In this document: piece by piece, positions 1 through 53,521 of the stretch | Position numbering within the stretch: position 1 is the first letter of the stretch | Layout of the letters: each line of letters starts with the position of its first letter | NCBI GenBank assembly: GCA_024704765.1 | Contig: JAKMXF010000061.1 | Location: 1 to 64,000, forward strand | DNA: 64,000 nucleotides | Source: Oopsacas minuta | Taxonomy: Eukaryota > Animalia > Porifera | Direction: 5' to 3' | Position numbers and translations under genes: made by a program | The notes under the pieces: generated by a model | Told to the model about the DNA's origin: nothing | Database searches by the model: none | Seen by the model: only the letters and a program-made list of their open reading frames with translations

Positions 1-785
1 GCTGGGAAAGAAAATTGTACAATAGGCCTAACTTGTACTGTATAGACCTTATAATATAGTGCCAATCAATGCAAAATCCGAATTTCGTGAATTTTCATAA
101 CTTGAAATCCTGACGTGATAGACCAATTCTAGGAAATATATTTTCATTTGAGGAATAAATTTGATGTTGCCCAGTGTTATAGGACCGCTGATGATGTGAC
201 AGCTTCCATGTACCACTTCCATGTAGTACGAATAAATGATGTACATTTCGTGTATTCACTATGTTCCAAGTATATGTATTTGTCACAATGGTCTTGTCTT
301 GAATTGTTTCTCCCGGAATTCCCGTTATAAAATTGTCTGCGTCCCATTTTGATATTATCAATCAATTTATAACTTTGATTTACGATTACGAACAATTCTC
401 AAATAGTCGAAATCTGTTTTTTGCCTTCCAAAACATTTGACCGACGAAAATTGCACTCTAAATCGGGAATTATTCACTAGACACATTTATGAGGGCAAAA
501 TTTGGGTAAAACCGATACGCAAAAGTCCTTGCAGTATAAATCCCAATGAGTTTTGTGTTTAAATAGTTTTAAGAAGTAATAATCAACTACAATGAGCAAA
601 ATACCACGAGGAAGCAAAATTGCCGAATTTGACTATATGCCTAGATATACTTAGATTTTATAAACATGTTTACTTCCACTAAGGCGTTCATTTAACTCAC
701 TGTGCTTGGTAAGACACCGAACATTTTCTTAATTTAGCGTAGCAATATTCTCTACATTACCTTTCTTTATTTTCTCTTCTCTCAG

Positions 786-956
786 GTGCGATATCGTCAA
801 ATGGAATTTGAACGCAAGCACAAGCTTTATAATGATCATTGTATACTTCAAGATGGGCAATTAGATTCTAGTCCACTTTCTCATCAAATATTCTCTGGCA
901 ATGCGCTTATTCCCCCAATTCAACAACATCCTGTCCTACAACATCATCATACTTAA
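786..956 (+). CDS. CBFB: Putative terminal coding exon (exon 2) of core-binding factor beta: VRYRQMEFERKHKLYNDHCILQDGQ...VLQHHHT*
   Basis: Strong acceptor (ctttctttattttctcttctctcAG, AG at 784-785), phase 0, open for 56 codons to TAA at 954-956. Joined to the phase-0 donor at 16077 it gives RAQLEEKLRKDAMEQ|VRYRQMEFERKH, which aligns without gaps to the vertebrate CBFB stretch RAQQEDALAQQAFEEARRRTREFEDRD (recalled from memory). Not in the ORF track. Confidence 0.75.
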   Translation: MRYRQMEFERKHKLYNDHCILQDGQLDSSPLSHQIFSGNALIPPIQQHPVLQHHHT

Positions 957-2048
957 TTCAAATTATTCCAATTTATTTATTTATGATGATACTCTCGGCT
1001 AACTTGTGTTTATCTGCCGCAAAACTATTATACCTGAACTTTTGTATTACTATTTTTGTCAATCTGTATGATATCCTCACTATAGTTTCTTAATTATACT
1101 TACTATATTTTTCCTATGCATATATTATTCATATGTTGGTTCGAGATAAATGGATGAATTTTCGGTCTAAATATGTGAAGTATTATTTGTTTTATAGTTT
1201 TAATGAACCGCATAATCTTATTCATTTTTATGCAAAGTCCAGTTTCATCAATTTCGTTTAAGCCTAGTAGAATAAATTTCAATGATCATTACTAAATTTG
1301 ACAGTATTGCTTTATTTCAAGATTTGCTTGAGGCCTTTTGCCAACATACTCTCATCCCAAATGTAGTGAATTTGAGAACTTAGCAAGTTACATATTACAA
1401 ATCCCTGATGAAATTTAGAGGGCATTTAGGCCCTCCATCCTTACGAATTTAACAAACTTCAATTCTCAACCTCTGACCTTTCAACAGATGTTGCTTGGGA
1501 GGTATGAAATACTTTGTGACCTAAGAACATTTTCGTTTACAATGATTTCTAATATTACTTTCAGCCCTCGAGCATCCGACTATTGCGTTGGGTAGGAAAA
1601 TGGGCCCATGATATGTGACCAGACCGACCATTATATAGGATTACTTTTATCATTCAAAACCTCTGTGTTTTGGCCCCTAATTAATGTTTTACACATTTGC
1701 TGAAATACCTGTCATCAATACTGAATTACAAACACATTCCCCTTCTAGGTTGCTGTGGCACGGCGATATTCCTCGGATTTATATTTAGAATATCTTAGCT
1801 GTGCGTTAGTTCTCTGCAGGACTCAACTCCTTGGCCCTAGGTGCCTTAAATTTTGATATAGCATCGTGAGGGGACACTGAGGTCCTTACACACAGGGTTG
1901 GCAAATTTACCAAACCCTCGAGTTAAACCCTATTTAATTCCGGCTCAGTATAATCCCAATTTGGGCTTTTGCTTTGTGAAACCTGATTACTTATTTCGTA
2001 ATAATATCACGATGTTTATGTCACCCTTCATTAATTTGCTTAGGCCTT

Positions 2049-2390
2049 AGGGCATTCAAAAAGTTCCCATCTTTGTTTAATACCTTGACACTACAACAAC
2101 TTACTAATAAAGTTTCTACATAAATGCTCAAAATACTCCCCCTCTAGATCAATTCATTGTTACCTCTCAACCTACTTCGAAATGATTTTGTATTTTCGTC
2201 CTTGTCTACTGAATTTAGGTAGTAGTAAATGCCGTTTCCTAGCTCTTTTCGGGTATGAAAAAGCCATCCTTCGAGATGTTTGTTCACCTCAGGAAATAGC
2301 CAGAAACAAGGTGGTAGATCTGGGGAATACGGAAGATGTTCAGATCGTTTCAAACACGATATCCCCAATGACTCTCTTAACCTATTTTGA
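2049..2390 (-). pseudogene. mariner transposase C-terminal remnant with one TIR-like end
   Basis: ORF 2144-2368 has HLPYSPDLPPC-FWLFP (mariner YSPDLAPxDF motif). The end at ~2049, agggcattcaaaaagttccc, resembles mariner termini. Confidence 0.65.
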
Positions 2391-3829
2391 AAAATGAGGC
2401 CTGATATTATCGTGGAGAAGTTGGATTCCTCGAGTTCCTGTACGCGGACGTCGTGTATTATAGTCTCTCCCGACTTCCCTTAGGTATTTATCTGCGTAAA
2501 ATTTTCCATTGAGTCGTTCTCCTTTAGGCATAGGTATTTGGGCCACTGGCTCATTCGCATAAAAATTATGTTATAGAGAACTTTATCGTCTCGGCAGTCT
2601 GGATGTCCCTTTGGGGGGATAAGAACCTTTTGGGAGCCGTGACTGGCTTTGTTCCTACGCAGAGGTTCAGAAAATTTAATCGAAATTTCGTCACCTGTAA
2701 CGATTTCATATAACTTTCGAGAATTGCATCTCTATATTCTTTAAGCAATTTATTCGCGCATGAAACCCTCTTCTCCTTCTGCCCCTTTGTGAGGATTTTT
2801 TGTATCCATCGCGCTGATATCTTTCGATTTTCGAGATAATTGTGTAGAATTGTATGAACGCTTCCCGATGAGATTTCCAGGATGGAGAAATCTCTTCAAC
2901 GATCAAATGGAGGGCCAATATCCAATAGTTCTATAATTTGAGAGGCTATTTCAGGGGTAGCGGAAATTGGTCTTCCGGTCCGAGGGGGCATCTTCATTGC
3001 TGCCCCTACCAGCCTTTAATTTACGTGCCTATTCCTTTACAGGGGGATACGCTAGAGCTTCCCCCCATGATAAACGGTGACGAGATCCTCGTGTATCTGG
3101 AGTGGTTTGTCGCCGAATACGGTACAAATCATTATATAGGCTCGTTTGGTTTTTCTTGATGTAGTGAAACCGCGTTAATACAAACACATTTAATACGAAT
3201 TTCCGTTAAGACGAACAGAATCTTACACAATTCTCGTCCGTACATTGGATATTCCATTGTTTTTACTCCGGATAGGGAGTACAAATCTCGACGGTTCCTT
3301 GTTGTAAGTATTCACGAGGTCCTACTGTATGTGTTTTGAAGCCATGAAAAAGTTGACTCTCGAAATAGGTACAATTGAAAGTAGCGTAGATCAAGATATA
3401 TAATAGCTAGAGTGAATTGCTCAACATACAACAGCATTAAATCGGTAATCGATAGAACTATAAGGATATACTATGTTTTCATGTAATTGAGTAGAGTTTG
3501 GATGCTATGAACTAAGGATGGGAACTTTTTGAATGCACCAAGTATTTATGAATCTTACATAGTCATAGAATTCATAAATAATATTATAAATAGGTAGTTA
3601 AATCATCCACATTTTCTATTCTATATTATCTAATTGTAGAAATTTGGAAACTAGAAGACTGGAGGCACAATATCATTCATTTTATCTATTTCGATCTTAG
3701 GTTCATATAGATAATAGACTGTAGACACATGGAATCTCTAGGCCAAACTTTCTCCTCTGTCAGTTTGTTTTCAATAATCAGTTGTATTACTTATTGTTGT
3801 TAACATCCTATATTTGGGCCTTAAAATAG

Positions 3830-5350
3830 TACATTAAGCTTGTATAAGGGCAACTTCTGAGATATGATGCCGTATCTCGGAGTTACCTGTATACACACAG
3901 CTTCGCAAATCTTTAATTCCCGCAAATATTATATACATCTCATATGTCAAGGTGGCAGATCTAAGAAACATCCTGATTTCGCTGCCATACACTTGTGTCC
4001 AGACCCAACTGCCAATTAGTGTACACATTTTATATTTCCTTCAAGTTCAACAAATCTTGAGGAGAATATCATCCACTATTAATCTTCCACCTATTGAAGA
4101 ATTCCCGCTAACATTTAGAATTCTGGAGGCCTAGTTGGCTCTTGGTTGCCATACTATCTATAACCAACAATATACGAACATTAACACAAAGTATGTAACT
4201 CTATTTTGCGTAACCCAAACTCTATCAACACACATCGAACACGGTTGTTTGGCGAAAAAAATTCTGATTTCTCCATTCTCACAGAGACCCATCTATCTTT
4301 GTGCTGTGAATGAATGTAATATATATCCTGAAATTTATGAAAGATATTGTAAATCCTGAAACGGCCAGGCGCTGAGCTGGTGTATCTCTCGATAAAGGTC
4401 CAGAAATTGTTGATATATTCCGATCAATGTTCGATGGAAAGTTGGAGGCGCTAGTTGTGAAATATACACTGCCGCACGCATAATTTCAGAGATAAGATAT
4501 TAGGAGTTGACGGATTCCCCATTTAACAAAACAATTACTGTTGCTAGACAGTTGTTTTCTGATATTGATGATAAATGTTCTTTCTTTGTAGTTCCAAATG
4601 CTGAGCGATCAGTATGACTGATAAACCTATTTCGACCATAGACATCAATTCAGCCCCTCCACTACATTTATAAACTGAAATATTTCGGTTTATTAATCGG
4701 CTGGTTTATCACCTCCATATCGAGAAATTGAGATGGTTCCGACTTCCCCCACGATCAAACAGTCGATGAACTTTGTTTAAACTTTAATTCAGAAATATAC
4801 TGGCTTGAGGTTGAAGATCCAGATACAAGTGGAGGAACAGCATGTATAGGCAACGTAGCTCGCAGAGCATTTTGTGATGAAACTGGTTATCTAGAATTCG
4901 CACAATCTACGTTTGCAATTTTCCATGTACTAGCATATGCAAAGATATATACTCAACTAGCTGCTATTCTCGAAATGTATAATTCCTATATAATGTGAAT
5001 ACTGTGGAATTGGGTGTGCAAAACATCTATCTATTGATTTTTGATTCATTGGCGAGTATCACACCAACGGTACACAAACTTTTAGCCATCCTTGAAGAAT
5101 TGCTTCCTGATTCCAACTCTGGATTTGGTTTATAACATTTCTCCGAAAAAGGAGCAAAGAGTTGTAATGAATTGGCTATAAACGATAGGGAAATTGGGTT
5201 CTAAAAGATGATTTCGAAACTACTTAAGTAATATTATGGACATATTTGTTAGATTGGCCTGAAATTGGCCTCTTCATTGAACTCTCTGGGATGTATAATC
5301 TGCCAACGATGTGGTTAGCCTGGACATTCATAAAGATCGAAATGTATGTC
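3830..5350 (+). pseudogene. RAG1-core/Transib-like transposase remnant (T1), heavily frameshifted
   Basis: Motifs in order: YTQLRKSL; degenerate first-Asp region (PLTFRILEA*LALGCHTIYNQ); SPFSQRPIY; RSMFDGK (~4425); SGGTACIGNVARRAF (~4830); frameshifted SITPTVHKLLAH/FSEKG region (~5050-5160); C-terminal CQRCG*PGHS*RSKC (5301-5345). Termini not found. Confidence 0.8.
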
Positions 5351-7689
5351 AGAAGATACTATGCAAACATCTGAGAGTCACACTTTTTCTTCCTTAACCA
5401 TTTAACCATCATTATTAACTACAATGACACCTTATGCATATTTCTGAATAAACTATTCTAATTAAGTGGCAAGTTTACCCTATATTTTTCCAAAATTTAG
5501 GAAACTGTAAAATTTCACGATTAGTGGATTATTGCATTATCGGCAACGGTAGAGACTTCCTAACTTCTATTTCAAATTTTAAATTACTATCTTTTATAGT
5601 TTTTAAAGTATCCACTTTCTACATACCTCCTTTTTCTGAATTTTAGTCTAGATTTCGTCATGAAAACCTCAATTTCCCATGAACTTTTTAGCCGCCATTT
5701 TTCCACTGTCGTTATATGTCTAACTCTGCATGTATACAAGCTAGATTCAAAGACTCAACTTTTTTGGATGGATCTAACAATCTACAGGATAATAAGCGAA
5801 CTAATCTTCAATTAATGCAATAAAACATTATTTATAAAATTTAAAATTTATGTCATTCGACGTCAAATCATATCCCGAACTGAATTGACCACCAGCTTGC
5901 TCCATTTTGGAAAATTCAAATTCTAGTTCGCTTATTAGTCAATTCGAAGGAGTAGTAACAGAATCCCAAAACTATTTGAGGAATATAGCCAAAAACATTC
6001 TTAGAATTTTCAAAAATATTTTAGGCTAATTGAAAAATCTAAAGTTTCTAATGTACATATATGTTTAAGTATTAGTGTATTTTTGGACTCAACTGGATGA
6101 ACCGGATACGCGGTTAAAATTTCAAAAAGATCGAACCACAGGGACATATATAGTAGGTCTCTAGGGTATACTTACCTGTTAATAAATATTTTCAAACATA
6201 TAATATCTTTAAGAAATAATCCTTTATGACGTTTTATAATGAAAATCGAAGCCAATATTTTTTGGATTCCTTTCGACCCGCAGAGATCGATAGCCCACAT
6301 GCTGCTAACACATTATATGTATCTAGGATGCATAAAAAGTCCTATTCTTTACCAAATTTCAGTTTAGACCACCGTGCGTTATTCTACTACAATCATAATG
6401 CAATAATTCACCGAATAAATTGAATTGATATCAGTGCAAACTATATAGTTAGGCTAATTAATTAGTTGGTTGAGGATATTCTAATAGGCTCAGGAATATA
6501 ACAGTATGAATAAATTTCCATAGCTCTGACATGACGTATCCTTGACTCAAATCCGTCATTTAGTATCATTGCCCTAGTGTACAGAATGCTATGTGTAAGC
6601 TTTAAGCTATATTTATTAGATGGCTATATTATTTGTATTCTATAAATACCTATTTGTAAGTATGCGGCCATACTTTAGATCACTAATCAGAAAACTGCAA
6701 CATTCACCCTCAAATTCAGTAAATCTCATGTAGAATATAATTTATTCTAGTAATTGTTTTAGACAGGCGATGATAACAACAATGATTGATTGCACGATTG
6801 TATTAATTATAACATTCAGATAATTTTAACATAATTTCGTGCAGAAAATGTGTTAAATATATCCGGTTTCTATAGTCCATATAATCTCTGGAATTAGAAA
6901 GATGGAAGCTTGTTCTTGAGGTATTACTGGCTATTTTAGATATTTTACTAAGAATGTAGATAATTAATAGTACTAACGTGAAAAATCAACACAATGTTTG
7001 ACAACCGTTATGAAGCGATATTCGATTATAAACATTGCTAAATTTACAACAGATAACTAATTTCAAATTTTTCAAGAAAAGTTGCCCGTTCAGTCTCTGA
7101 ATTATGGGAGCTACGTATCAATCTTCATAATCAGCCAAATAGTGTATGGATCAGAATGATGCCCTCAAATTTTCGACCTCCTTTTCTTGACTAATGCGAA
7201 TTAATTATCAAGTTGGAATTGCTATAATATTGTACAATGGTTACAAATTTGACATATTGGTTGCCATCTACATTCATGTCATAACAAATGCTTGCCAACT
7301 GTTTTGTGATCTTCAAGGTAGATTATGTCAAGGAACAAATTTTGAAATGCTTCAGGATAGCCTTTCGTTCCTTTTCGAATATCAGTGTATCCATATGGTC
7401 CATCACGTCCGTGAATTATCGAAGCCCTTCGACTTTGAGTAATGGGGCGCGAAGAAACAAATCAAAAAGGAGAAGAGGAGAGAGTGTCAGGTCTTCGTAA
7501 AACATCCTTGACATCTGAAAATTCTTTCGGGAATTCTACAGATATGAACAACAACGATCTATCGCGGATAGAGGTCGCTTCAAAGATGTTGGTGTCCAGG
7601 TTCGTTCACACCCCGTTTCTAGAAGATTATCATTTCCCGGAATTCCCATATCACAGTTGACAATGTAGTCATATGTATGGGATTTCCAC

Positions 7690-10530
7690 GGGAGGTGCAC
7701 CTATTCTCGCAGCACCTAAAACTTCCGCAAATATGCTCTAAGTGGATACCTCATTCCCTTTAGGTACCCAAAGACCGCTGTTTTTGTGCTTCTAAAGTTA
7801 CCCTCAGAGTACGGGATGCTGATTTCTATCAGAAATAATTTCTGAGAATGAGACATGGATTCGATATGATGAACCGCTCTCCAAGGGTAAAATATGGTAG
7901 AGATCCTAAAAGGAGAGGAGCGTCCAGTCAACCCAAAGGGCCATTTTAAGAGATTAAAGGTCCTATACTCAATATATTTATGCTCATGGTCTGGTTGTCC
8001 AGATAACCCAAGGGCATACGTACGTCTCCTCCTAATCCTCAAAAGTCTCCTCCTGATTGACACCCTCATTCATAGTCATTCCTGGCTTCCGACTTAAGTA
8101 GTCGGCAACTGGATTTTCCCTGCCTGTCCTGTATTACGTTTTAAACGGTAGTTTCTGAAGTTCCATTAACCAACGGACATACGTATGTTTGGGATTTTAG
8201 CCACTTCAGGGGGCAATCGTCAGTCAATCAGACAATACTAGGAGCAGATTTTAGGTAGACTGCCCATTTACGGCACGTCGATACCACTGCCCATGCCTCT
8301 AACTGTCCCGACGAGTAATTCCTTTGTGCTGCTGTTAGGGATGAGCAGAAGAATTGGATCGGTCCCAGTTTAACTGTCTGCATGTCCAGTTGTGACAATA
8401 CAACATCGATAGTAGTTGACGGTGCCCAAGAACCTCTCTAACTCTGTTAAAGATCTCAGGTGAGGAAATGCTTCCATTTCCGGACATAATCAGGAACAGG
8501 ACTTCTTCCTGCGCCTGAGATTCGGTGACCTAGATACTGCACTTCCCTGTACCCTAGCTGACACTGGTCCTTTATTAACTGCAATCCGATCGAGTCGAGA
8601 CGTTGGAAGACAGTTCTTGAGTGTAGAAGGTTTTGCCCAAATGTCGAAGAAAATACGAATATGTCGTCGACGTAGCTCTCGCAGTTGGGTTCCTTTTCAA
8701 ATCCTCTGTCCATAACTCTTTGAAACGTGGCAAGTGCATTGCACAACCCGAAAGGCATCATTAACATTTCATACATCCCCCAGGGTGTGGAATACCGTCT
8801 TCTCTACATCTTCTGGATGAATTGGGATGGCTCAATATTCAGAGGCGATATCGAATATAGAGAAATATCGCCTCCCTAGTAATTTATCGAATATCGATAG
8901 GGGGTCAGGTAGAGAGTAATCGTCACTTTTGGTCACTGAATTCAATCGACGATAATCGAGGGCATATCGTAGGGTTCTATCTTTCTTGTTCACCATAGCT
9001 ACATCAGAAGACCATGGAGATTTTCTGGGGCTACAAATGGGGGGGTCTGCCACGAGTACTTCTTCCATTGCCTGGAAATTATATACTCTCATCGGGGAGG
9101 TATGCGTTTATGACGTGACCTTTGGGGTGGTACGTCTCATATTAAATTTGCATGAGACTCATTGAACTTGCATCTATTCGGGCGTTTGTGATGCTGTGCG
9201 AACAAGAACTCGTATCCCGAATTCAGTTCCTCGCGTTTGGAAACACTGCTAACATTCAATTCGGGGCAGATAAGCCTTCCACTTCCACGGGGGGTTTATC
9301 TGCTTTCTTCTCTACATCTTGTTGCTCCGCTACCTTCGCACGTATCAGGCGATTAGCTCCGCTGAAAGAGTATTCTTCGAGAATCCATGCCGTCCTAATC
9401 GAATCGGTCGATTAGCCCAGTCAAACGTGACAGTCCCATGCTGTTCCAGAAAATTTCTCCCCAGAAGCAGGAGTGGTTCTTTCTTATCAATTTCATGGCT
9501 TTGTTCCAATTTCGTTTCAGAATTCCCTATCCGGATCGAAGCGTCGACAAAAGTATGGACTCGCACAGGGCTATCGCACAGTCCAATACTTTGCTCGTTG
9601 CGGTACAATGTCATTAATTAGTTGGAGTTGTGATGCTGTGTCGTAGCCCATGACACTGGGTTTCGCACCTGTATCCAACATCGCAGCCATACTGTGATCC
9701 CCGATTCCGACTTGAACTGTTACGGATTCTTCCCTGTAGTTATTTCGTATATCCTGCGCTTCTGATCCCATGGTCTTCTCAGTTTACGGGGACATTTAAA
9801 CGGTTTGTGACCTGCTTCGCCACAATTATAGCAGTGCTTGTTAGGGCAATTGCCAATTAAATGATTTCTCGAGCCACATGCATAACATTTCAGGGGCGTA
9901 GTTCTAGTTTTCCTAGGGATTGTGGACTTGGTCCGGATACTTGAAACCTTGGTGGGAGTGGGCTCTCTGTTGCTTGACTCATCACTCTCCATGTCCTCTG
10001 ATGTTGTTTTCACTTCAGAGGCCTTTTCCTGAACGCGTTGTATGCGACACCCCCGATCCAATGGAATCCCCTTCTCTGCGAGTGCTTTATGAATTACTGT
10101 ACTCAACTGCAGAGCTTCGTCCATTGATAGTCCTTCATCCTTGGTCCTCACCCATTCTTTAAGCTTGGTTTGCACTTCGGAAGTACTTGAGACACCATAA
10201 ACATACATGCTGTTTTTGTCTTGATTTCAGCGTTGACTGCCTCTTCAAGGAACCTCACAAAGAAATCTTGAACGGGCTCTCCGGGGGACCATGCCATGCC
10301 ACGGAAGCTCGCTGTGGATCAAGACCTCTTCCTTCGTGTCCAGAAGTTCCATTAGATAAGCGAAGGCTTCAGCTAGTGTGTCCTTAGAGACTGCTCCCAA
10401 GACCACTTTTTCTTCGAGTCGACCGCGAATGATGTGAGCTGGTAACAGTTTAACCCCCGCATTTCTTCTATTGTTGCTATTGCAGCCACAAATAAGGGTT
10501 GTCATCTCCCAATGGTCTGACCGTGTTTTA
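7690..10530 (-). mobile_element. Degenerate Ty3/Gypsy LTR retrotransposon internal region (gag, protease, RT, RNase H, start of integrase), internally deleted
   Basis: Two CCHC knuckles (CYACGSRNHLIGNC, CYNCGEAGHKPFKC); protease MLDTGA; RT motifs SPWSSDVAMVNKKD..LRYALDYRRLN, MPFGLCNALATFQR, YVDD; RNase H QRNYSSGQLEAWAVV...NPVADYLSR (~8100-8350). PR-RT-RH order is Gypsy type. Confidence 0.9.
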
Positions 10531-10535
10531 AGTGT

Positions 10536-10766
10536 TGTAAAGCTACAGTGAGTTCAGTTGCCATAGTTGAAACATTTGTTATTTATGTAATGAACTAAGT
10601 AGTAGAATGCCGAAGCAGAATGTGAGTAAGATTAATAGAAATAACAAACAGATTAAGGCAAACAAATAAAATGTAGATGTCCCTATATATAAATATTGTA
10701 AGCCTATAGACAGGTGGTACTACAAGCACCTTGTGTGGCATATTATAATTAATCATAACGGTTACA
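10536..10766 (-). repeat. Candidate 5' LTR of the Gypsy element
   Basis: 231-bp segment bounded by TGTAA...TTACA directly upstream of gag. No second copy in the window and no clear primer-binding site. Confidence 0.4.
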
Positions 10767-12177
10767 ATAATATATGGTTGGGTCGGGAAGCTTTAGAAGC
10801 TCATTAATTTTAGAAATGAGTTGATTGTACCAAGAAATGATTGTTCTATCAACTTATTTACCCTTCCTCCAACTCATCCAATTTGGTTAGTATCAACTCG
10901 TTTATGTTGGCATTACCAACATAATCAAGAAAATGAATTGATTTTGAAAAACCAATTGGGTTGATATAGCTCTGTAATATATATATAGTGGGTGAGTTAT
11001 CAAAAATCTGAAAAAGAGAGCATGTTCCCCAATTAGTGATCCCTGTCTGACGCCTTTTCTGTTTCTTGCCAAGTGACCCGATTGTAGGTTACTCTATTAA
11101 GTGGAGTCTAGTGAATATTAATTTATTAATAAAACGCGAGTTAATAATGAATTTGTTGTAAGAAATATATAGAAATGTAATTGGGTACTAAATCATCTTA
11201 ATGGCAAATTTAGATAGGGGGCCTCTGAAACTATTATAGTACAGGGGCTTAAAATTTATCAAGCAGTTCCAAAGCAAAATACAACTCAATAGTGGCTTTC
11301 TAACATAATTTGCTCGATATTTTCAAATATTACTAAATTTACTACAAATATGGCAATTTACCGCTGAATGTCTGATATATTGACTACAGGGAAAATTTTT
11401 TGCAAATATCAAAATTGTATGTTTTGTCTAACTGTTTCAGATAAACCACATCTGTTCATATGTAATTTTCTTTAGTTCACCGATAGTCGAACAGACATTT
11501 CAGCACCGCCCACCGCATTAAGTGAGAGGAAAATATGATTGATCAGAAAAGATAGATTTTATTGATATTGGTTTTGAAATTTGAAATTTGAAATTTCCTA
11601 GTCGATTTACTCTGACTAACAGTTGAGACGAATATTCTAACATCATTCTGAAATATTTTCAAGGTGTGAAAAACTATAAATCATTTGATAAATCTGTGAA
11701 TTTGTAACTATTAAATTGTGACAATATACACATATCAATAATTTCAGATGCCAAGTACACATCTAGAGGTAGCTACGAGTATACATACAAGATTTTTAAG
11801 TCTTTTTACACTAACATAATAGATTCTTTTGAAAGCTGTAAATTTCAACTGTTTAGAGCTGTTGCGTAGGATTTTGACTCGCAATCCAAAATCCCAATAG
11901 CATATCCATGGTGCGGGTCAAAATCCTACGATGTAATATATGCGTGGGATTTTGACTCGCATCCAAATGTATTATTCTTGTAGGATTTTTGACCCATGTA
12001 TTACACAACTCAACAAGATTTCTCATCAGAGATCACATACATTCACCTTAGCATACTTTTGAATGCTGAACTCGAATCTGCAATCAGAATTTCTCTAGCA
12101 CGTCTAGTTATTCTGAAATCCAATATCCATTTTTTCAATAGTATAGTATTACCTGGTTACTAAATTGCTATATGAGN

Positions 12178-12392
12178 TTCAGTTTAGTGAATATCTAGAT
12201 TTCTGTATTTACTGTATATGGTAATTACGATTACGTCATATATGGAAAACCTGATGTGATACAACAAAATTGAAATCAACAAAAGAACCGCAATAGTCGA
12301 CTTACTAAGTAATAATGTATTTTATAAGCCTATCTCTAAAATTGAACGCGTAAAACCCTAATACTAGCAATTCGCAATAATAGCCCACTGTG
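12178..12392 (+). mobile_element. Isolated right end of the RAG1-like/Transib family of 17545-20741
   Basis: Near-identical (a few small differences) to 20526-20741. Ends in CACTGTG (12386-12392), begins immediately after the single N at 12177, and is followed by CAGCTC. Confidence 0.95.
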
Positions 12393-14500
12393 CAGCTCCA
12401 CGCCTAACATCATCTACATCAGGATCAAGAGCTAAGAAGGTGCAGGCAGCTAATGAGGCTGCAGACAAGATCCAAGATTTCGACCACTTCTCCGTCAAAA
12501 TATGTTCCTATTTTCTTGGCTTTATCGTCATAAAAGACCAGAAAAACCCATACCTATCAAGAACTTGCGCTACTGTACAAACTGTCAAGCAGTTCTTTCA
12601 TTTTCAACAAGTCAGTTCACCATTTGGATTCCTATTCTTGAATAGAGTTGACAAAGATGGTTTTGAGGTGTCCGAGCGACTATTTCCTTTGCAGAAGAAC
12701 AGCTAACTTTCGAATTGGTCCCAGATTGGATACATAACTGACCAGGTAAACGCCTATGAGTACACAAGCCAAGAAATTCTTGAGCACGCAATAAGTCAGC
12801 TCTGCAAGATGACTGAGGCGCACGAGCTTGCTCATTTCACCTTCCTTCTGTCGCAGTTGTGCCTTATATTCAAACCTCCTGATGGACGCCGATTTGACAC
12901 TGATCCTATGATTTTCGCAGTGCAGCTTCACAAAATATCACCCAGTGCATACAAAATGATTCGCCGATCCGACTTAATCATTCTGCCATTCTGCCATCAA
13001 CAGAAAGGGTAAAACAGATGCTTGCTAGGAGTCTGCAGGACTCCCACCTCAAAATCTTTTTCGACCAGCTTAAGCCACAGCAGAGTTGATAAATTTAATG
13101 TTTGGCCAGGTAGAGCGGGTCATTGCGACATTCTGGAGGGCATGTTCTAGGATACTCGCAAAATACTGTAGCGGGTGGTGACCATGAAATGCATTGCTTC
13201 ACATGTTATGGTCGTTGAGGTTGCCTGCCATTTTGGTGGTCCACGCTATATTCTACGCCTTTTGCCTTGCAAAAAATACGGATCAGCTGAAAGAACTCCT
13301 TATCGAAGCTGGTTCAGCTGTAGTTGGTGCTGGCGGAACTGTGATTTCTTTGATATGCGATAATTGCAATACCAACCGCAGTGTTTATTCAAAACCTAGA
13401 GGATCTGGAAGTTGTCAAGTGCTATCGACTCAAGAACAATCTATTTTCTTAGTTCACGACTACTTGCACATCTTCAAACATATACGGAACAACTGGATTA
13501 CTGTTGATAGCAAAACACTCATTTGTCGTAGATGGCAATGAGTCAAAAGCTTACTGGAGTGATGTTCAGAAGCTTTATGAGATTGACAGAGCTATTCCTA
13601 TTCGCTTAACCAAGCTGACACACACCGCTGTTTTCCCCAAACCATTTCAACGGCAGAGCGTACCATTGGTATGTTAAGTGTTCAATGCAAGACTGTCGCT
13701 GCCTTGAGGACGTTCAAGGGTTCACTGGACATCAGCGAAGGCACCTTCATTCTCACCCAGGCAAAGTGTGAGTGGTTCAAGATAATGAATGTGAAAGACC
13801 GTTTCTCAGCTCTCTGTCTTCAGGACGAGTCCAGACAGCCTTGGACAGCAGACTGTACAAGTTTAACTAGGCTGGAGGAGTCCTGCCAAATTATATCTAC
13901 CTGTGCATGGCTAAGAGGTTGTGGTCGTAAGCTGAAGCTAACTAAGCAAACTGCTGAAGCCTTCACTGTGTCCACACGTAATAATGTGGATGCTGCCAAA
14001 TTGCTTCTGGCGGACAGAGACTTTGACTACGTTCTTCCTGCTATATTCGCGGACGAAGCCTTGGAAAAGTTTTCGGCCAAGCCAGGCAAAGAAGAGGTGG
14101 AAACTTTTACATTGACGATATCCTCTGCATAAAGTTGTTTATTTGGCCGGGTACCTTGTTTATAAATATGGTGATACCATTAGTATGGAGGAGATCATTG
14201 GTGATGAAGATGGTAACGAGGTGTCTTCTGAGTTCCTAGATAATTTGAATAGAAGTGGATTGTGTGTGCCGACTATGTCAACCGTCTTTTTTGTACCCAA
14301 TGTCTATAATTTGCATGACCAGACTAAATTGCGTTGCAGCTTTCATTTTTGCTGAGCTATTATCTTTTGCAGATGCACCTTTAGCAGATAATAAGGCTGC
14401 ATGTACTACTTTAGCTAATATTCTATTGAAAGCTCATGTGCTCAATGTAAGTGATAAAGAAAAGTCTGGGATGCCTCAGGAGGCAAGACAAGCTCTCTAA
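12393..14500 (+). pseudogene. THAP/P-element-like transposase, central and C-terminal part (continuation of 17264-17544)
   Basis: AVQLHKISPSAYKMIRRS..ILP, LICDNCNTNR, VHDYLHIFKHIRNNW (DxxH), RQSVPL, WFKIMNVKD, FADEALEKF. Many frameshifts and stops. Confidence 0.85.
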
Positions 14501-14564
14501 CTAACGATAGGTATAGGCAATGTTGTAATAGACATAGTGTTGTGACATGCAAATATTGTACATA

Positions 14565-14704
14565 CAGTAGAACTCGGATAAGACGTACCTCTCCGGGAAG
14601 TCTAAAATAGTACGTACTATCCCAGTTTACGTACTAACCGAGTTGTATTACATAGAATCATAGGTAATGATGAATTTTGGTTCATAAAATTTGGTACGTA
14701 CTAA
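14565..14704 (+). mobile_element. pogo/Tigger-type terminus running into the assembly gap
   Basis: TA followed by CAGTAGAACTCGGATAAGACGTAC with internal tacgtac repeats. Other end not seen. Confidence 0.4.
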
Positions 14705-15133
14705 NNNNNNNNNNNNNNNNNNNNNNNNNNNNNNNNNNNNNNNNNNNNNNNNNNNNNNNNNNNNNNNNNNNNNNNNNNNNNNNNNNNNNNNNNNNNNNNN
14801 NNNNNNNNNNNNNNNNNNNNNNNNNNNNNNNNNNNNNNNNNNNNNNNNNNNNNNNNNNNNNNNNNNNNNNNNNNNNNNNNNNNNNNNNNNNNNNNNNNNN
14901 NNNNNNNNNNNNNNNNNNNNNNNNNNNNNNNNNNNNNNNNNNNNNNNNNNNNNNNNNNNNNNNNNNNNNNNNNNNNNNNNNNNNNNNNNNNNNNNNNNNN
15001 NNNNNNNNNNNNNNNNNNNNNNNNNNNNNNNNNNNNNNNNNNNNNNNNNNNNNNNNNNNNNNNNNNNNNNNNNNNNNNNNNNNNNNNNNNNNNNNNNNNN
15101 NNNNNNNNNNNNNNNNNNNNNNNNNNNNNNNNN
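14705..15133. other. Assembly gap (429 N)
   Basis: Run of N. The poly-X ORFs in the track are artefacts of it. Confidence 1.
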
Positions 15134-15638
15134 GAAATTTAACTTACATAAATGTCCATGGGTAACAAATATAGACAAAATTTCAGATTTGAATTCTCAC
15201 TTTCAGGTCGTATTTTTAATAGATAAGCGACCCTACTAGTCATGACAAAAATCAATAGGTAAAGGTTACAAATATTTAAGAAAATGATATTTTTATAAAC
15301 TTCCAAGACTCCTCTACCGAATGATATTAATTTCGGGTAAATCTGATGAGTACAAGTAGAACAAATTAGTGATTGAAATGATCCTGGTCGAATATCCTGC
15401 AAATTCACAGTCTAATATAGATGAGTTAAAATCTCATGGTGAAAGGCTGTCCCTGGTCCAATTATACTAATGAGTTCGAATCTCACGTAACAGGACTATT
15501 AGTGTAATGCTAATCAGATTTAATTGTTCGGACTTCCCCACGATTTCACTCCTATGAACCTTACACTTTTGCAGCCATAATAAAATTCTTAAACACTAAT
15601 TTATCTTTCACCTATTCTTTAATTTTAGCCCATTTGAA

Positions 15639-16076
15639 ATGCCACGTGTGATTCCTAATCAGAAGGAACGATTTGACAAAGATGAATTATTCAAAAAGTT
15701 GACCCAAGATTGTGAAGTGAAATACTCTGCATTTCGTGATTTGCAACATGAAGAGCGTAAGAAGAAATTTCTCGAATCAATCAAAGAAGGTTACTCCACT
15801 ATTTCTTTCGTGAATACTGGCAGCAATCTTTCTCTTCAATTTTGCCGTAATGCTTGGTCAGATATTCGTGAAGACCGCTTGCCGACTCCTGATTTTGTGG
15901 ACTTCTCTAGAGAGGAGGGTAGGGTAAATTTGGAAGCCTTTTTAATATTCAATGGAGTTTGTGTTAACTGGGTTGGGTGGATTGATCTCGAATCTTTATC
16001 AGGTAAGGCAAAATTTGTTTTCAACTTTGAACGAGCTCAACTTGAAGAGAAATTGAGAAAAGATGCTATGGAACAG
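15639..16076 (+). CDS. CBFB: Core-binding factor beta (Runx partner), exon 1, 146 codons; unspliced read-through stops at 16100
   Basis: MPRVIPNQKERFDKDELFKKLTQDCEVKY...TGSNLSLQF...FNGVCVNWVGWIDL...FERAQ matches the CBFB/Brother family end to end. Donor CAG|GTAATA at 16077, phase 0. Confidence 0.97.
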
Positions 16077-17263
16077 GTAATAATCCCTTTAAGTGAATAA
16101 CACTGACAATTTTCGTTATATTTCAACTAGAAAGAATTGGTGGAAAGCTGGTTATTACCTCATTCGAAGCTCATTTTTAGCAGATTTTCATACGTTATCC
16201 AATAATGCATGAGTGCGTTTTGGGTAAATGTTTAGAGCACTTTACATTTCCACTTATCTAGTGAATCGCTACTAACCATTTCAAATCCACTCCAATAGAC
16301 TAAATATCATCCTATTGGATCTCATCGTTAGTTTGCCACCACTTTGATATGTCAGTAATCAAACTATTTGCCCTTTGCATCGCGGAATGAGTTAAGAATG
16401 TTCTGGCATTCAATTGTCGGAATGTGTCTAACTCTATCGTGTGACCTATTTTTCGTCCCTGCTAAGGCTAGGTGACAGTTTTACAAGATAGTCATTCCTT
16501 AATTATACCTCTCGGGTTAAAGCTTATTTAGTGGGATAAACTTTTTTAAATTTTGTATATTCCGCATAGATCGTAACTATAGTCATTTCATTATCTTGAT
16601 CGATTGATTTCTTCTATCAATTCTATTTGTCTAGAAATTTGTTATTCTGATAATATATGATTGGTGCATTTGACTCCGAATAATGTGTATTATTGCTGAA
16701 TATGAATTAATAGGCTCTGTTTACGAACTCTTTCTAGGCGATTATGAAGTTATTTGAATGGTTGGATTTGAACATCTTCAAAATCTCTCCCTTCAGCGGT
16801 CTATTCCGTCCATAGACTCCTTTAGAGAAGGACTAGAACGTCGCGATCTCAGGGTTTTAACTTGAGTCTGAGAAGCTCCAATTTTAATATTGAAAAAGCA
16901 TTAGAACTTATATTTACCTGTGGTTGGGGGCCAGACACCACCAGGAAGCTTAAAATGAGAGTATTGGCCACATTTCCCTTTGACCTTATGCAGATATGAA
17001 CTTCCTGTTTTCAACCATATTTCCTTATATCTTCCTTCTGTTTTGGGATATGTGCATATTTTGTGCAGTGGTTGCGTGTTAATAATTTATTTTTTGTTGC
17101 AAATATGTCTTCATGTTTATTGATATTGATTATGCATGATAACGTGTCATATGTCCAGACTTTTGAACATATTTTACTGGATTGATACTCTGATATTTTG
17201 ATTGAACCTTTCTAGCTGGTGATCTAACAGGATCTTTGTTTTGTTTTCCGCTTTTGTGACAAT

Positions 17264-17544
17264 ATGCAACGTCGTTGCAGCTGTTTTGGTTGTAGTGTAA
17301 ACTATGATGGGACGCCTTAACTAAAGCTCATATCCTTCCCAAAAGATCCTGGGGACAGAAAGAGATGGATATTGGCAATGCCAAATGAAAAATAAAGCTT
17401 GAGGCGCTTGAAGGAGATATATATATTTGTGAGAGACAGTTCAATTGTGAATGGGTGTCAGTAAAGGGTTGAAAGCGATCCAAAGAACCGCCATCAATAT
17501 TCCTGGAGTACCGAAATCAGTTTTTACGCAGGTAACCTCAGCTC
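17264..17544 (+). pseudogene. THAP domain N-terminus of a P-element-like transposase, interrupted by the RAG1-like element
   Basis: MQRRCSCFGCSVNY...FPKDPGDRKRWILAMP...ICERQF...PPSIF(P)GVPKS with stops and frameshifts. Ends at CAGCTC directly before CACAGTG. Confidence 0.85.
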
Positions 17545-20500
17545 CACAGTGGGCTACTAGGATACATTAGGCCCAAATTCTTACCTTCAATTTATACCAT
17601 TTTGAATTATGAATTAGATTCTAGATATATTCAACAAGCGATATGTAAAGTATCAGATGAAACAGTTAAGTATTCTATTTTTGTGGTCAATCAACTGTAG
17701 GACTTCATTGCTGTATTCTATGTTTATCCAAACATTATATAAATTACAGAAGCAATTTCAGTAATCTTTTGAATTTCTGATGCATACTATTGTTCATTTA
17801 CATGCTTTCCAAGCAAGTGAGTGCGCTGAAATTGAATCTATCATTGAATTTCTTCAGGAGCGAAAAGATTAATCAGATATTACGGATACGATACTGGGAA
17901 AATTTTGTAGAAATTTCTCCCTCCGCCATAAGCCATCCTGTTGGCAGCAAAATTTGTTTGCACTAGTTTCCACACTGAATTTTTAGTATGTATTCTTCTC
18001 AAGTATTATAACCATTATATTCAAAGTACAAATGCCGCTTCATTGCGCAACATATTAAATATTGTCAAATTCCATTCTCACATCTACGTTGCTATGGTAC
18101 AATGTAATGTAATTACATGGTAATTTACACCAATATAACGTATAATTATTTATATTATACTGCATATTACGAGGTAGCACACAAGTTCATTAATTTGATA
18201 ACCTATTAAACCTCTAATTATCAATGTAAAGATGGCTGAAGCAACAATAGTATCTGAAAGCCCGAAAACACGTCTTGACTTGGCTATTATATTAAAGGTT
18301 CACGACTATGATATTAATCAAGCAGCAGATGAAGTGGTGCGTATACTAAATCTCGAAGAGGAAAGAGACATTCAGTATACTCTCTAATGTCTAAAGTATC
18401 AATAAATTTCAAAAAGAGTAAGAAATCTAATGAGAGCTTAGATGGTGAGTGGTGGAGTGCAAGTATTCCATGGATACTTGTTAAACCTAAGAGTACCCAA
18501 TCATCCCTTTCTGTTTCAGACTGTGATGTAGAAAGCGGTGTTATATTGGTTCCAAATGTAGAGAGGAGAAAATCAATTGATGACATTCAAGTTCGTTCAA
18601 AGAAGACAAGGCTTGATCAGACTGGGATACTTACTTCCATCCGTCAGTTAGCACAACTTGAAAATATTTCTGTTATTCCCTACGTTGCTCTCCTCCTGTA
18701 TATTGTAGCTGTAGAACAAATTGGTTTTAAAGGCATCACAAATATCGCTTGGAAAATCTATAACGAAGAATCGATACCAACCCTCAGTAACATAGTTTCA
18801 CCAGAAAAATCAACATTCTTAGCATATCAACTTAAGCTGGGAAAGGAAAATGGAGGGATCTTAAATATTATCTCCAATCAGAAGGCCTCGTTTTGGCAAC
18901 TTGGGAAAAAATTAGTGAGATTAGAAAATCAATTGTTCCAACATTCGACTGGTATCCAAATGTTTTCAATCCTATAGGGGTCTATATATCTTACTCATCA
19001 CATGTAATTTCTCTCTTTGACCGGTTGTTAAAAGAATGTGTGCTAAATTTTCCTGCACCACACTTCTATCCATTAACACTCAAAATCAAGCATGGACTGG
19101 ATGGTTCTGGATCTCATTCCTCTCCTGGGTTATTGTCAGACTTGAATATAGACTGATCAAATTATATTGTCTTCATGGTTTGACCCCTTCAGGTAATAGA
19201 TCGATTCGGGAATGTTCTGTGGGAAAATAGCCATCCTAACTCCTGTTTTTCCAACCAACCAGTAGCACTTATTTGCCAAAAGGAGACTATTGACACTATG
19301 ATAGAATTGAGCAAGTAACTAAACCCTGAAATTGTTTCACTAAATGAGAATGGTTTTGATCACCTAAATGGCTATGTTAAAGTAGAAGTCAAAGCTTCAA
19401 TGTTTGACGGAAAAACGTTAGCAACAATGACAGGTAAAGGAGGAGCGCCATGTATTGCCTGCAAAGCAACCCGAAGTGACATCAATAGTATTACGAAAGT
19501 TGTTTACGGGTTTCCTTTAGATTGTTCTATAGAGGATATCAAAGAGACAATCCGTCAGTTAACCTCTGATGGAGAAGAGCTGATGAGCTACAATACAGAG
19601 CAATGGTGTGGGATTACACACGAACCTGCAAGTGGCATTGATGTATTTCCTGCAGCACCTTTACATTCTTACCTAAGGATTTTAGATTGGTTTTTGAACC
19701 TCATCTACCGAATTGCAGCAGGAAAGTCCAAGTGGACTGAAGATCAAATGGGGCGAGATTATCGAGGTTTAGTATACAAGCGTATCCATGAGCTTACGAA
19801 CTTATTATTCCACCAACCAGGAGGAAGTGAGAACACAAGCACTGGTAACATGACAAAAACATTTTTGTCATATAAAAAATTGTGTTTTAGGATCGCTTTA
19901 TCGTTTGTACCAATGTTTATAGAGATGCTCTGACAGAGATTCACAGGAATCTATCTGCATTGCTCAGAGTTGCTAATAGTTATGAAGTTGTCGATGTAGA
20001 CAGATTTCGTGTATTAAGTCAAGAAACCTACATACTAATCTTACAAACCTTTCCCTGGGTATCTATTAGCAATACACTCCACAAATTCTTGGCTCATGCC
20101 CATCAGTTTATTGAGAGAAATGACAGGGTAGGATTGTGTAGTCTTTCTGAAGGAGGGTTAGAACAAGGACACAAGTTGATCCGAGAGTTCCCAACACATT
20201 TGAGGAGGAATCAGATTTTCTAAGTGGGTTAACTGATGTTGCAATGAGGCTCTATATCTATGGTTGTCCAATTCTGAATGAAAAATTCAGAAGGATCACA
20301 ATTTGTTCCATCTGTGATCAAGTGGGCATCAAAAGAATTGTGTAAAAAACAGGCAAGGTGAAAACGTTACTAATAATATTGATAATGAAGATTCTCTCCC
20401 TCAAAATTCCATAGATGAAATCTTCTTGTATTTAACATTAATTCATCAATAAGATATTCGTATGTTAGTTATTCTTCAGTTACCATTGCCATTATATATT

Positions 20501-20741
20501 CATATTCTATTTCTTCTAATAAAAATTCAGTTTAGTGAATATCTAGATTTCTGTATTTACTGTATATGGTAATTACGATTACGTCATATATGGAAAACCT
20601 GATGTGATACAACAAAATTGAAATCAACAAAAGAACCGCAATAGTCGACTTACTATACAGTAATAATGTATTTTATAAGCCTATCTCTAAATTGAACGCG
20701 TAAAACCCTAATACTAGTAATCGCAATAATAGCCCACTGTG
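17545..20741 (+). mobile_element. Full-length (3197 bp) RAG1-core/Transib-superfamily DNA transposon (T2), single gene, pseudogenised
   Basis: TIRs: left CACAGTGGGCTACTA (17545), right reverse complement CACAGTGGGCTATTA (ends 20741); 14 of 15 identical. Transposase fragments lie in between. Confidence 0.92.
18232..20420 (+). pseudogene. RAG1-like/Transib transposase of T2 (~720 aa if repaired)
   Basis: NBD-like RKSIDDIQVRSKKTRL; GLDGSGSH (Asp 19100, D600-like); MFDGK (Asp 19406, D708-like); CIAC; PLHSYLR; TSTGN; LHKFLAH; SEGGLEQGHKLIR (Glu 20161, E962-like); C-terminal CSICDQVG(H). Several frameshifts. Confidence 0.92.
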
Positions 20742-36656: not shown

Positions 36657-37947
36657 TAGTACACAAATGAGAAATGCAATGAATATCCTTTACTATTGGG
36701 TGGGGCAATTTATTTTCCACTATGCGCATATCTTCTCTAGAAGCTATTGAAGTCGAATGAATTAGCATAAATTTTCTTAATCAATAGCAAGAATTAATCT
36801 AGTAGAATTACCCAATTCTAAGAATTATTCTTAGAATTGCTTAATTCCAAGAATTGTTCTAAGAATTATTCTTAGAATCCTTTAAGCATTGCCAAGTTAA
36901 GAATTCTTAACGAAAACTAAGTATGTTTCATGAATACTTAGAATAATTCTTAGAACTTTAGTTAATAAGGCCCCTGGCTTCTGAGACATTGCACGGCGGC
37001 CCTGAGGTCCCATAAGTGCTTCCCCACGTCGGTGAGTGTGTCATAAAATCATCTCCGTAATATTCTGTCTGCTATGCTTTTTCACTGTTGAATTGATCGA
37101 TCGCTAGACTATGGCCTGAGAATTGCAGAGACCAAACTGAAGTACTTCAAACTGGAACTGCCCTCTGGGTGTATCAAACGTCGTGATTCCCTATATTCTT
37201 GACATACTGACATAGCAAATATGCAGCGGCCACATCCATACAAGAAAAGATCTTGCTACAGTCCTATCAGAGACGTCACCAGGATTTTTCACCAAGGGGC
37301 AGGACGATGGGTAAGGTGTTTCATGGGTTTAGCAGGAGCATGCCCAGTTCCGGATCTATAAATTTTTGTTGGGTAGAACCATCCAGCGCGGCAGTTGCGT
37401 GGTGTAGCTTTGATACTCGGGGGGATAAGATTTCAATCTGATTGTCAACAAGTTCTAGATGTTTCCTACTAGATTGAATTTGTGCACCGCAGATTTCCAA
37501 GCCTATGGCGCTGTAAATAATCAGTAATGGCGAAGAGCCAAACAATTGAAAGAAATTATGTTTGGCTGCAAATACCTCAGAAAGTTGTTTTTTCTGGTTG
37601 AGTAATGTGTAGCTCGGAGAATATTTGTGGCCCCCCAGTCACATATGCACGACGCTACTGCAGCTGGGGTTCTGGTGTGGTGTAGGTGGTCCAGTCGTGA
37701 CGGGACGTAGCCCTGGAGAATACTTTATGATTACTACTACTAGGCCCGACGGAGGCTCGCGAGATGTGAGGCGACCTTGAATTGTGATAATCGAAGAGTA
37801 AATAAAGTTACTTGAAGGAATCGACAACCCTCAAATATGCATTCCGATTATGAATGGAGTCATAAAGTTTGAGAACTCCACTAGAGATTACATTTGTCCT
37901 CAATGCAAACTAAAGTTGAGATACATTACTATAAATCAGTGTAAATA

Positions 37948-39305: not shown

Positions 39306-40329
39306 TACATAACAATCAATCAAAAAGAATATCACTACAAATATAATAACTATACTATTCATATCCGAACGAATTATTGATAAATTTGAGATATAGGCGA
39401 TAAGTGGTGAGAAGACGAGATCCTGAGGCGATATGCATCCTACTCGAGGGGTATTACATCTTCGATAACGGGAAATCGGTCATTGGGGATCCATTCGAAA
39501 GAATGAGGTAGTGGGTTGCTGCACTAGGGCCTTAGCACCTCTAACCTCCAATAGTGGCGGATCGGGATCACAAATGGTTTCCATTGATGGAGAGGAATTG
39601 CTCTCGCGAATTCATTAAAATATGATGGCTCGTCAAAAGATAAACAGTAAAATTATCGTGAACCACGCCCCCGAAACTTTAAGTACCAACAGATTTACAT
39701 AAAAAGTGGGGCGGCTCAGGCCGTCCCAGCCGCCCCTTCAGATTCCTAGGGGTCAATGTACCTAGAAACAGATCTAGCTTCTTAGGCAACAAATTGTTCG
39801 TTGACCAGTGTTATTTTCCGATTGGCTTTGTGCTTGCGCATATGAATAAGATGGATACATTTCAGGGTTCTCCTCAGGAATTTGTTAAGGCATATCAGTT
39901 TATGTGTCATATGTCTGGAGGAATTTTCACCAGCCATAGCTCAATGCCAGAGTGATATATTTGGACTAAATAGTGAAATCTTAAACAAACAACAACGACA
40001 AGTTATCAATAATTATTATATCAATGGAGGTGTCGCCAAGAAAGTCGTACGCTAATCCTTGATATTATAACTTGTATGGTCAATTCAAATTTTACTGTGC
40101 CGACTATACTTTAGTATAGTGGCCCAGTATTGAGATGGGTTTATCTATCTTTTCGCAACTGAAGAGATACCGGCCCGGGAAAACACTGCATTTGCTCAGG
40201 GTATTACCACTCGAAAATATTACCTAGTTCGGTAGATCAATACAAGCTTTATCCCTTATGTATGTGTGGGATTAATAATATTGTGTGTAAGATGAGAGCG
40301 AAGCTATCCGAAATTTTCCAGTTTACAAT

Positions 40330-53518: not shown

Positions 53519-53521
53519 NTT

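Follow-up and report, generated by a model that had tools for sequence, protein, structure and literature searches.

The CBF-beta gene of Nematostella has six exons (PMC2527000). The gene of the glass sponge Oopsacas minuta differs from this in having only two coding exons, separated by a single intron that follows codon 146. It resembles the genes of known CBF-beta proteins in that exon 1 is a full-length match to the CBF_beta domain, and the terminal exon appears to continue their C-terminal helix (alignment A1); a Q/H/P-rich tail, by which it differs from these proteins, was found only in two close relatives.

As assembled, the locus also resembles scrambled or trans-spliced genes (e.g., the scrambled genes of ciliates): the two exons share a strand, and the apparent 3' exon precedes the 5' exon. 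It differs from them in that its breakpoints coincide with assembly joins and the flanks of a transposon argue for an artefact. With the artefacts of short-read and mate-pair scaffolding, it shares joins between contig ends lying in different repeats, preservation of the strand, gap sizes that disagree with the missing sequence, and transposon halves in the wrong order; it differs from them in that the contig of exon 1 also seems to be chimeric inside a transposon. The Oopsacas minuta assembly was produced by hybrid SPAdes, followed by SSPACE, Pilon, and GapFiller (PMC10280926).

We analyzed a window of 64,000 bp, which is the very start of scaffold C61 (1–64000). Our analysis indicates that it very probably carries one ordinary two-exon CBF-beta gene, the order of the exons being an artefact of the assembly and not the structure of a scrambled gene.

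Coding exons, transcripts, and the public gene model

The coding features of the locus are as follows.

15639–16076, plus strand: CBF-beta coding exon 1, 146 codons; ATG at 15639, donor GT at 16077–16078
786–956, plus strand: true terminal CBF-beta coding exon (exon 2), 56 codons and TAA; acceptor AG at 784–785
16738–16815, plus strand: exon that comes second in the public model (171 aa); unsupported, not conserved in relatives and absent from the joints listed for the RNA-like run

The translation of exon 1 matched Pfam family CBF_beta (PF02312) with an E-value of 1.7e-51 at profile positions 1–145 of 167 and a score of 174.6 bits, which is above the curated cut-off of 25 bits. Scanning of the whole 61 Mb assembly with PF02312 revealed one locus (174.1 bits), and exon 1 was single-copy. 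The exon 1/intron boundary reads GAACAG/gtaata with the cut after 16076; a phase-0 donor after codon 146, which an earlier sequence-only reading of this DNA had placed at 16077, is thus present, with GT directly following the 146 codons. Exon 1 of the relatives had 83% identity to that of Oopsacas minuta, with the CAG/gt donor in common.

The acceptor of the 786–956 exon reads ...ttctcttctctcag directly before GTGCGA. In tblastn, the exon 2 peptide had 61% identity with locus L004 of a relative (E-value of 4.7e-21) and 60% identity with relative loci L020/L021 (E-value of 4.8e-22). The phase, the cag/GT acceptor, and the stop are all conserved in the homologues from two related species; the exon therefore stands far beyond chance, and the phase-0 acceptor and 56-codon exon claimed from the letters alone are real. 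The reading frame is intact, with dN/dS of 0.2–0.34 at dS of 0.8–1.2, and exon 2 is under purifying selection. When exon 2 was aligned with distant CBF-beta proteins (P0005–P0007) over their C-terminal helix, the R, E, and Q columns were invariant. Weak tblastn matches in L002 (LSHQIFS, PFLQYHH) were discarded as chance matches without an open frame.

Exon 2 was also single-copy in the 61 Mb assembly, and no further homologue of it was found either within the 64-kb window or across the genome. This agrees with the earlier failure to recognise a matching exon downstream of 16100, and the copy count that had been proposed as a check comes to one copy each of exon 1 and exon 2. In the scaffold as assembled, the terminal exon does precede exon 1, both being on one strand, as had been claimed. 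Pfam gave no match to the 56-aa exon 2 peptide alone up to an E-value of 10, and a word search of protein libraries with it gave no candidates. An exhaustive search of representative proteins yielded one spurious match, to a protein of 2968 aa; the gene calls of the library are unspliced, and this search is hence uninformative. Nor was a spliced CBF-beta with the exon 2 tail found in the protein libraries searched, whose gene calls are unspliced.

The public model, 'hypothetical protein LOD99_10780 [Oopsacas minuta]' (P0001), is 171 aa in length. Its exon 1 and donor are identical to those proposed here; however, its last 25 residues are derived from 16738–16812, and the conserved exon 786–956 is missed. 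It had been predicted that automatic annotation would overlook this exon and call a protein of 153 aa; the exon is indeed unannotated, but the public call is 171 aa. The likely product of the gene is a protein of about 202 aa, made of exon 1 and exon 786–956, for which we infer the splice junction.

Read evidence consisted of Logan contigs from four runs of one sample. In the RNA-like run X4, the summed depth, given per contig and therefore unable to separate one copy from two, was 7,000–72,000 over 15574–16101 against 47 beyond 16102; it was zero upstream of exon 1 and fell sharply at the donor; this run indicates that the donor is used. A low-depth unspliced contig of this run spans the donor. 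Among the joints listed for X4 there was no 16076 to 16738 joint, and the depth did not rise at 16738–16815; no read or contig with the exon 1–exon 2 junction occurred among the rows listed for this run. The DNA contigs agreed with 15416–16987 throughout, without a difference. No repeat was bridged by the Logan contigs of the four runs.

Contig ends and a split transposon

The following features surround the two exons.

1–180, plus strand: scaffold start; final ~180 bp of a MITE-like repeat (~1.2 kb in full), which lacks its first ~1 kb here
12000–12176, plus strand: contig piece P1 at its right end; initial 177 bp of a repeat of very high copy number and at least 1.7 kb, cut at the N
12177, no strand: single N, scaffold join; contig ends in different repeats, sequence not continuous
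12178–12392, plus strand: 215 bp from the 3' terminus of a RAG1-like/Transib-like transposon, with ...CACTGTG as the last bases; 97% identical to 20526–20741
12393–14704, plus strand: 3' part of host transposon R, starting with the target duplication CAGCTC; natural continuation of 17544
14705–15133, no strand: assembly gap of 429 N with unrelated repeats on either side
15134–15500, plus strand: terminal inverted repeat (right) of an F2-type element that has no body in the window
16077–16810, plus strand: unique first part of the intron; depth jump at ~16806, where the repeat begins
16811–17544, plus strand: host transposon R, 5' part; its last bases before the insertion site are ...acctCAGCTC
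17545–20741, plus strand: RAG1-like/Transib-like transposon, CACAGTG...CACTGTG; the assembled flanks do not pair

The contig ends at 1, 12176, 12178, 14704, and 15134 all stop inside repeats, and the repeats at the last four are different. The scaffold begins inside the MITE-like repeat, which precedes exon 2 by 600 bp; the genome holds at least 40 copies of this repeat, and the full element was delimited in loci L007–L013. A gap and a single N had been said to separate the blocks, and they correspond to the 429 N at 14705–15133 and the single N at 12177; the only other N in the window, a single one at 53519, behaves like that at 12177. The sequence expected in the 429-N gap comprises ~365 bp of the R tail and at least 1.3 kb of the F2 element, which is more than the gap estimate. 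Elsewhere in the genome, the F2 repeat forms inverted pairs 1.3–5 kb apart.

Transposon R demonstrated weak P-element/THAP9-like matches (12393–14704). The RAG1-like element inserted in it has CAGCTC as the left flank and, as assembled, aaccca as the right flank, the mismatch being at 20742. The target duplication CAGCTC is common to the left junction (17544/17545) and the right junction at the other side of exon 1 (12392/12393), and joining 17544 to 12393 restores the empty site acctCAGCTCCACgcc, as found in the copy on C303 and in at least seven other copies. In the C303 copy (L023), the homologue of 16994–17547 runs straight into the homologue of 12393–14704, and the ORF is uninterrupted across the RAG1-like insertion site. 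The halves of R are contiguous in at least seven other copies, while both RAG1-like/R junctions of the window are unique in the genome. The two junctions are the two ends of one RAG1-like insertion into transposon R. The split transposon thus indicates that 12178–14704 belongs ~3.2 kb downstream of 17544 and hence downstream of exon 1. The element at 17545–20741 may, as assembled, be a chimera of two copies.

Exon order in relatives and the probable arrangement of the locus

In three long contigs from two relatives, the exons share a strand and exon 2 follows exon 1, with introns of 1.6, 15.8, and 18.2 kb between them and one CBF-beta gene per contig. Neighbouring genes are uninformative on the exon order: tblastx of the window against the loci of the relatives matched the CBF-beta gene and transposons only, and AP-mu, located 8 kb upstream in one relative, is encoded here on scaffold C277, with surroundings that share only repeats with the window.

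The canonical order in the relatives, the repeat-bounded contig ends, and split transposon R support the mis-ordering of the scaffold that was favoured in the sequence-only reading. In the true genomic order, exon 2 most likely follows exon 1, and the intron separating them, which is filled with transposons, would be at least ~9 kb long. This intron would comprise 16077–17544, the RAG1-like element of ~3.2 kb, 12393–14704, the R tail (~0.4 kb) and the MITE (~1 kb), both of these being unassembled sequence, and 1–785. The placing of 1–12176 relative to 12178–14704 rests on the gene order of the relatives and not on the DNA of Oopsacas minuta.

We infer the exact order of the pieces and the route by which the pipeline went wrong as follows. 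The draft assembly would have broken the intron at repeats into short contigs, and scaffolding would then have set pieces 1–12176 and 12178–14704 ahead of the exon 1 contig. Within the RAG1-like element, the exon 1 contig apparently was connected to the flank of another copy. Mate pairs read in the wrong orientation could have been the cause, reversing the order of the contigs and keeping their strand; such a model explains the 429-N join well and the join of the 12 kb contig only with long inserts. Contamination of the mate-pair library by short-insert paired ends was rejected, as it would work only if the two contigs were short and lay next to each other.

Alternative explanations and implications

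There is a slim chance that the locus results from a tandem or partial duplication, in which a complete copy has an unassembled or collapsed exon 1 beyond the left end of the scaffold, and the exon at 15639 belongs to a second, possibly truncated copy. The scaffold start falls within an intron, so the window alone allows an upstream exon 1; a collapsed identical copy of 15500–16800 would look similar, and the link from 14704 to 15134, together with the transposon logic leading from 17544 to 12393, makes a cycle, as in a tandem repeat. The tandem-paralogue option raised earlier is, however, weakened by the single copy of each exon in the whole assembly and the single gene per contig in the relatives. 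Variant letters were absent from 15134–16900 in all runs, and a duplication leaves unexplained the upstream place of 12178–14704, the right flank of an element lying downstream of exon 1.

A real chromosomal rearrangement, with exon 2 truly 15 kb upstream of exon 1, is very improbable. It could have occurred, for example, by ectopic recombination between RAG1-like copies, and exon 2 would then be an orphan, or trans-splicing or read-around of a repeated unit would join it to exon 1. The mismatch of the RAG1-like flanks could in principle arise by recombination in vivo, the region is extremely rich in transposons, and the Logan contigs of the four runs gave no direct evidence for the canonical order. 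However, at least two block moves would be needed, reversing three blocks exactly with their strands kept, and a contig end and an N would have to be present at every breakpoint; single Ns demonstrably conceal missing sequence. Exon 2 has an intact frame and evolves under purifying selection, the transcripts of exon 1 end sharply at the donor, and the relatives have the canonical order. We regard as extremely improbable the more specific proposal that the permuted order arose through recombination of RAG1-like copies and that the exons are joined by trans-splicing of two transcripts; trans- or back-splicing, which had been offered as an option, is not needed.

Finally, the notion of 786–956 as a chance open frame, with a gene product of 171 aa as annotated, or of 153 aa by read-through, deserves practically no credence: it could draw on the lack of a Pfam match to the 56-aa peptide alone, the protein searches that gave nothing useful with it, and the unspliced low-depth X4 contig across the donor, but it is refuted by the conservation of exon 2 in two species (tblastn E-values of about 5e-21; same acceptor, phase, and stop), and the annotated exon 16738–16815 is neither conserved nor RNA-supported.

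For the mis-ordered scaffold, which we prefer, the implications concern the public data in the first place. The C-terminus of the public CBF-beta protein model is wrong, and the exon that truly ends the gene has no annotation. The flanks of the split transposon provide a worked example of contigs mis-ordered, with the strand kept, in a widely used glass-sponge assembly, in which single Ns can conceal kilobases. If such mis-ordering recurs, the models of genes across such joins would be wrong, and long reads would be needed to check any claim that this genome lacks a gene or has a gene of odd structure. The biology of the locus is ordinary: it is a conserved two-exon CBF-beta gene.

CBF-beta exons in the window and in relatives

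Two coding exons of CBF-beta were found in the window, with the terminal one lying upstream:

15639–16076, + strand: exon 1, beginning with ATG, 146 codons, followed by GT at 16077
786–956, + strand: exon 2, a 56-codon frame ending in TAA (954–956), preceded by a polypyrimidine tract and CAG

The translation of exon 1 matched Pfam CBF_beta (1.7e-51; profile positions 1–145 of 167). The donor after codon 146 proposed in the sequence-only reading was confirmed by GT directly after 16076, and the proposed acceptor and 56-codon exon by the tract, CAG and TAA and by conservation in relatives. That reading had recognised no matching exon downstream of 16100. The relatives' exon 2, used as a query against the window, gave no further match beyond 786–956. 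Exon 1 and exon 2 each occur once in the whole assembly.

CBF-beta loci of two related organisms were taken from long ENA contigs. In one (L004, ERZ25766962), exon 1 ends with CAG/gt at 10438, and the exon 2 homologue begins at 12043 after ...tatatttcag/GT, with 61% identity to 786–956 (E 4.7e-21) and the stop at an equal place. Two contigs of the other (ERZ25072740) carry an exon 2 homologue with the acceptor ...ttcttcag/GT, located on the strand of exon 1 and downstream of it, by 18.2 kb in L020 and by 15.8 kb in L021 with L003. The canonical order, exon 1 before exon 2, was found three times in relatives, with a more than 10-fold range of intron length among their loci. Exon 2 also aligns to the C-terminal helix of more distant CBF-beta proteins. 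Between the present genome and the relatives, dN/dS was about 0.04 for exon 1 and 0.2–0.34 for exon 2 (dS 0.8–1.2); the latter value indicates that exon 2 is retained by selection. Judged by sequence comparison, the exon at 786–956 is the true terminal exon of CBF-beta.

The ERZ25072740 contigs, ctg126361 (399x) and ctg126370 (458x), have identical CBF-beta exons with introns of 18.2 and 15.8 kb, and represent either haplotypes distinguished by insertions or a segmental duplicate of recent origin. A 101-aa protein from a 109-kb ENA contig (P0008) matches residues 1 to ~40 of the relatives' CBF-beta, after which the frame is lost; this reflects either a frameshifted copy or an error in a relative's assembly. 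Neighbour-gene synteny between the window and the relatives' CBF-beta loci was uninformative. In one relative, AP-mu (Adap_comp_sub) is found 8 kb upstream of CBF-beta, and in the present genome on another scaffold (G000:C277:556187–556969, 10 kb from the C277 end); thus, local gene order is unconserved or the scaffolds are incomplete.

Public gene model and read evidence

The best protein match, "hypothetical protein LOD99_10780 [Oopsacas minuta]" (P0001, 171 aa), showed 97% identity over the 153-aa query. The expectation that annotation would miss the exon at 786–956 was correct, while the expected 153-aa protein was not what is annotated. After ...AMEQ, P0001 continues with 25 residues encoded by 16738–16812, for which the relatives' CBF-beta loci contain no counterpart. 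The 3' end of the public model is incorrect.

Four read runs of one sample contain exon 1, and their contigs were placed on 15134–17750. Three runs were DNA-like with flat depth, and a 1572-nt contig from a DNA run confirmed 15416–16987 with zero differences. The remaining run, X4, was RNA-like: depth was nil at 15486–15573, summed to 7,000–72,000 over 15574–16101 and fell to 47 from 16102 onward; as these are contig depths, they are read qualitatively, for the step at the exon boundary alone. Among the X4 rows listed, none joined the donor to 16738, and X4 depth did not rise over the annotated exon 16738–16815. This exon ends where a repeat begins (~16811), is supported by neither conservation nor RNA, and looks like an artefact of gene prediction. 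A depth jump at ~16806 in all four runs indicates that unique DNA to the right of exon 1 is limited to 16077–16810. A 934-nt X4 contig (16049–16982, depth 47), unspliced across the donor, represents a minor species, either intron-retaining or pre-mRNA, that would encode a 153-aa read-through form.

Repeats at contig ends and a split transposon

The genome assembly (61.46 Mb in 365 scaffolds, one of which opens with the 64-kb window) was produced with SPAdes from Illumina and corrected PacBio reads. SSPACE was used for super-scaffolding, and Pilon and GapFiller for polishing; the libraries included Nextera mate pairs (PMC10280926). The window outside CBF-beta is nearly all transposons (Tc1/mariner DDE_3, Harbinger-type Myb, P-element-like TNP and RAG1-like copies, with a retroelement at 7.7–10.5 kb), which explains the fragmented assembly. 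Two Tc1/mariner (DDE_3) copies, 37942–39319 and 59730–61122, are in direct orientation with 96.8% identity. Runs of N occur at 12177 (1 N), 14705–15133 (429 N) and 53519 (1 N), and every contig end here falls within a repeat:

1–180: end part of a MITE-like element of ~1.2 kb (at least 40 copies), remainder absent
12000–12176: opening 177 bp of a repeat present in very many copies and spanning 1.7 kb or more
12178–12392: final 215 bp of a RAG1-like/Transib-like element, matching 20526–20741 at 97% identity
13500–14704: repeat sequence
15134–15500: right terminal inverted repeat, element body absent from the window

Since the contigs end in differing repeats, the single N at 12177 conceals kilobases. 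The gap 14705–15133 should contain ~365 bp of one element and at least 1.3 kb of another. The 15134–15500 family (also L022, L024 and L025) has ~365-bp terminal inverted repeats in elements of 1.7–5.3 kb, and one right-hand repeat stops just ~140 bp before the CBF-beta start codon. At 53519, a contig ends mid-repeat with at least 1.5 kb missing: in C364 and C332, copies with up to 100% identity run on for another 1.5 kb or more, and the sequence to the right is unique and unrelated to the repeat on the left. Therefore, the ORF across this N (52950–53777) is not real.

A host transposon with weak P-element/THAP9-like matches (R) is split into 16811–17544 and 12393–14704. In its copy on C303 (L023), the homologue of 16994–17547 is directly joined to that of 12393–14704, the empty site reads acctCAGCTCCACgcc, and the open reading frame is uninterrupted across the insertion site; the halves are contiguous in at least seven further copies. 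The left junction in the window (17544/17545) is acctCAGCTC/CACAGTG..., and the right one (12392/12393) is ...CACTGTG/CAGCTCCACgcc. Each occurs once in the genome, and the flanks at 17544 and 12393 carry an identical 6-bp target duplication (CAGCTC). These paired junctions place 12178–14704 ~3.2 kb downstream of 17544 and hence downstream of exon 1, whereas the scaffold puts it upstream, across a gap. In the assembly, the RAG1-like element is followed at 20742 by aaccca..., a right flank that fails to pair with the left one. Apparently, the exon 1 contig was joined, inside this element, to the flank of a different copy. The 3.2-kb copy as assembled (17545–20741) is probably chimeric, combining two copies; coding capacity of the RAG1-like element should therefore not be read from it alone.

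Probable order of the pieces and proposed origin of the error

Scaffold mis-ordering, the favoured option of the sequence-only reading, is supported by gene order in the relatives, repeat-bounded contig ends and the split transposon R; these support the odd exon order as an assembly artefact. By analogy with the relatives, 1–12176 would follow 12178–14704. The intron would then run from exon 1 through 16077–17544, the RAG1-like element, 12393–14704, the R tail, unknown sequence, the MITE and 181–785 to exon 2. This is most likely the true order, with an intron of about 9 kb or more, inside the range of the relatives (1.6–18 kb), and a predicted product of most likely 146 + 56 = 202 aa. If mate pairs were read in the wrong orientation, contig order would be reversed and the strand kept. 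With an insert near 4.2 kb, such a model would reproduce the 429-N estimate at the 14704/15134 join; for the 12-kb piece it would give a negative gap, written as a single N, and would need longer inserts.

A tandem paralogue or duplication, also raised earlier, is very improbable, being unsupported by the single-copy exons and by variant letters in the read runs; a perfectly collapsed duplicate could still fit these data. A real rearrangement of exon order is scarcely credible: it needs several block moves with all breakpoints coinciding with assembly joins, and would strand an intact, selected exon. A chance open frame at 786–956 is ruled out by conservation in the relatives.

The exon order is not a novel genetic feature. 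In practical terms, the mis-ordering of the scaffold is of modest value: it corrects the gene model and calls for caution with this Oopsacas minuta assembly.
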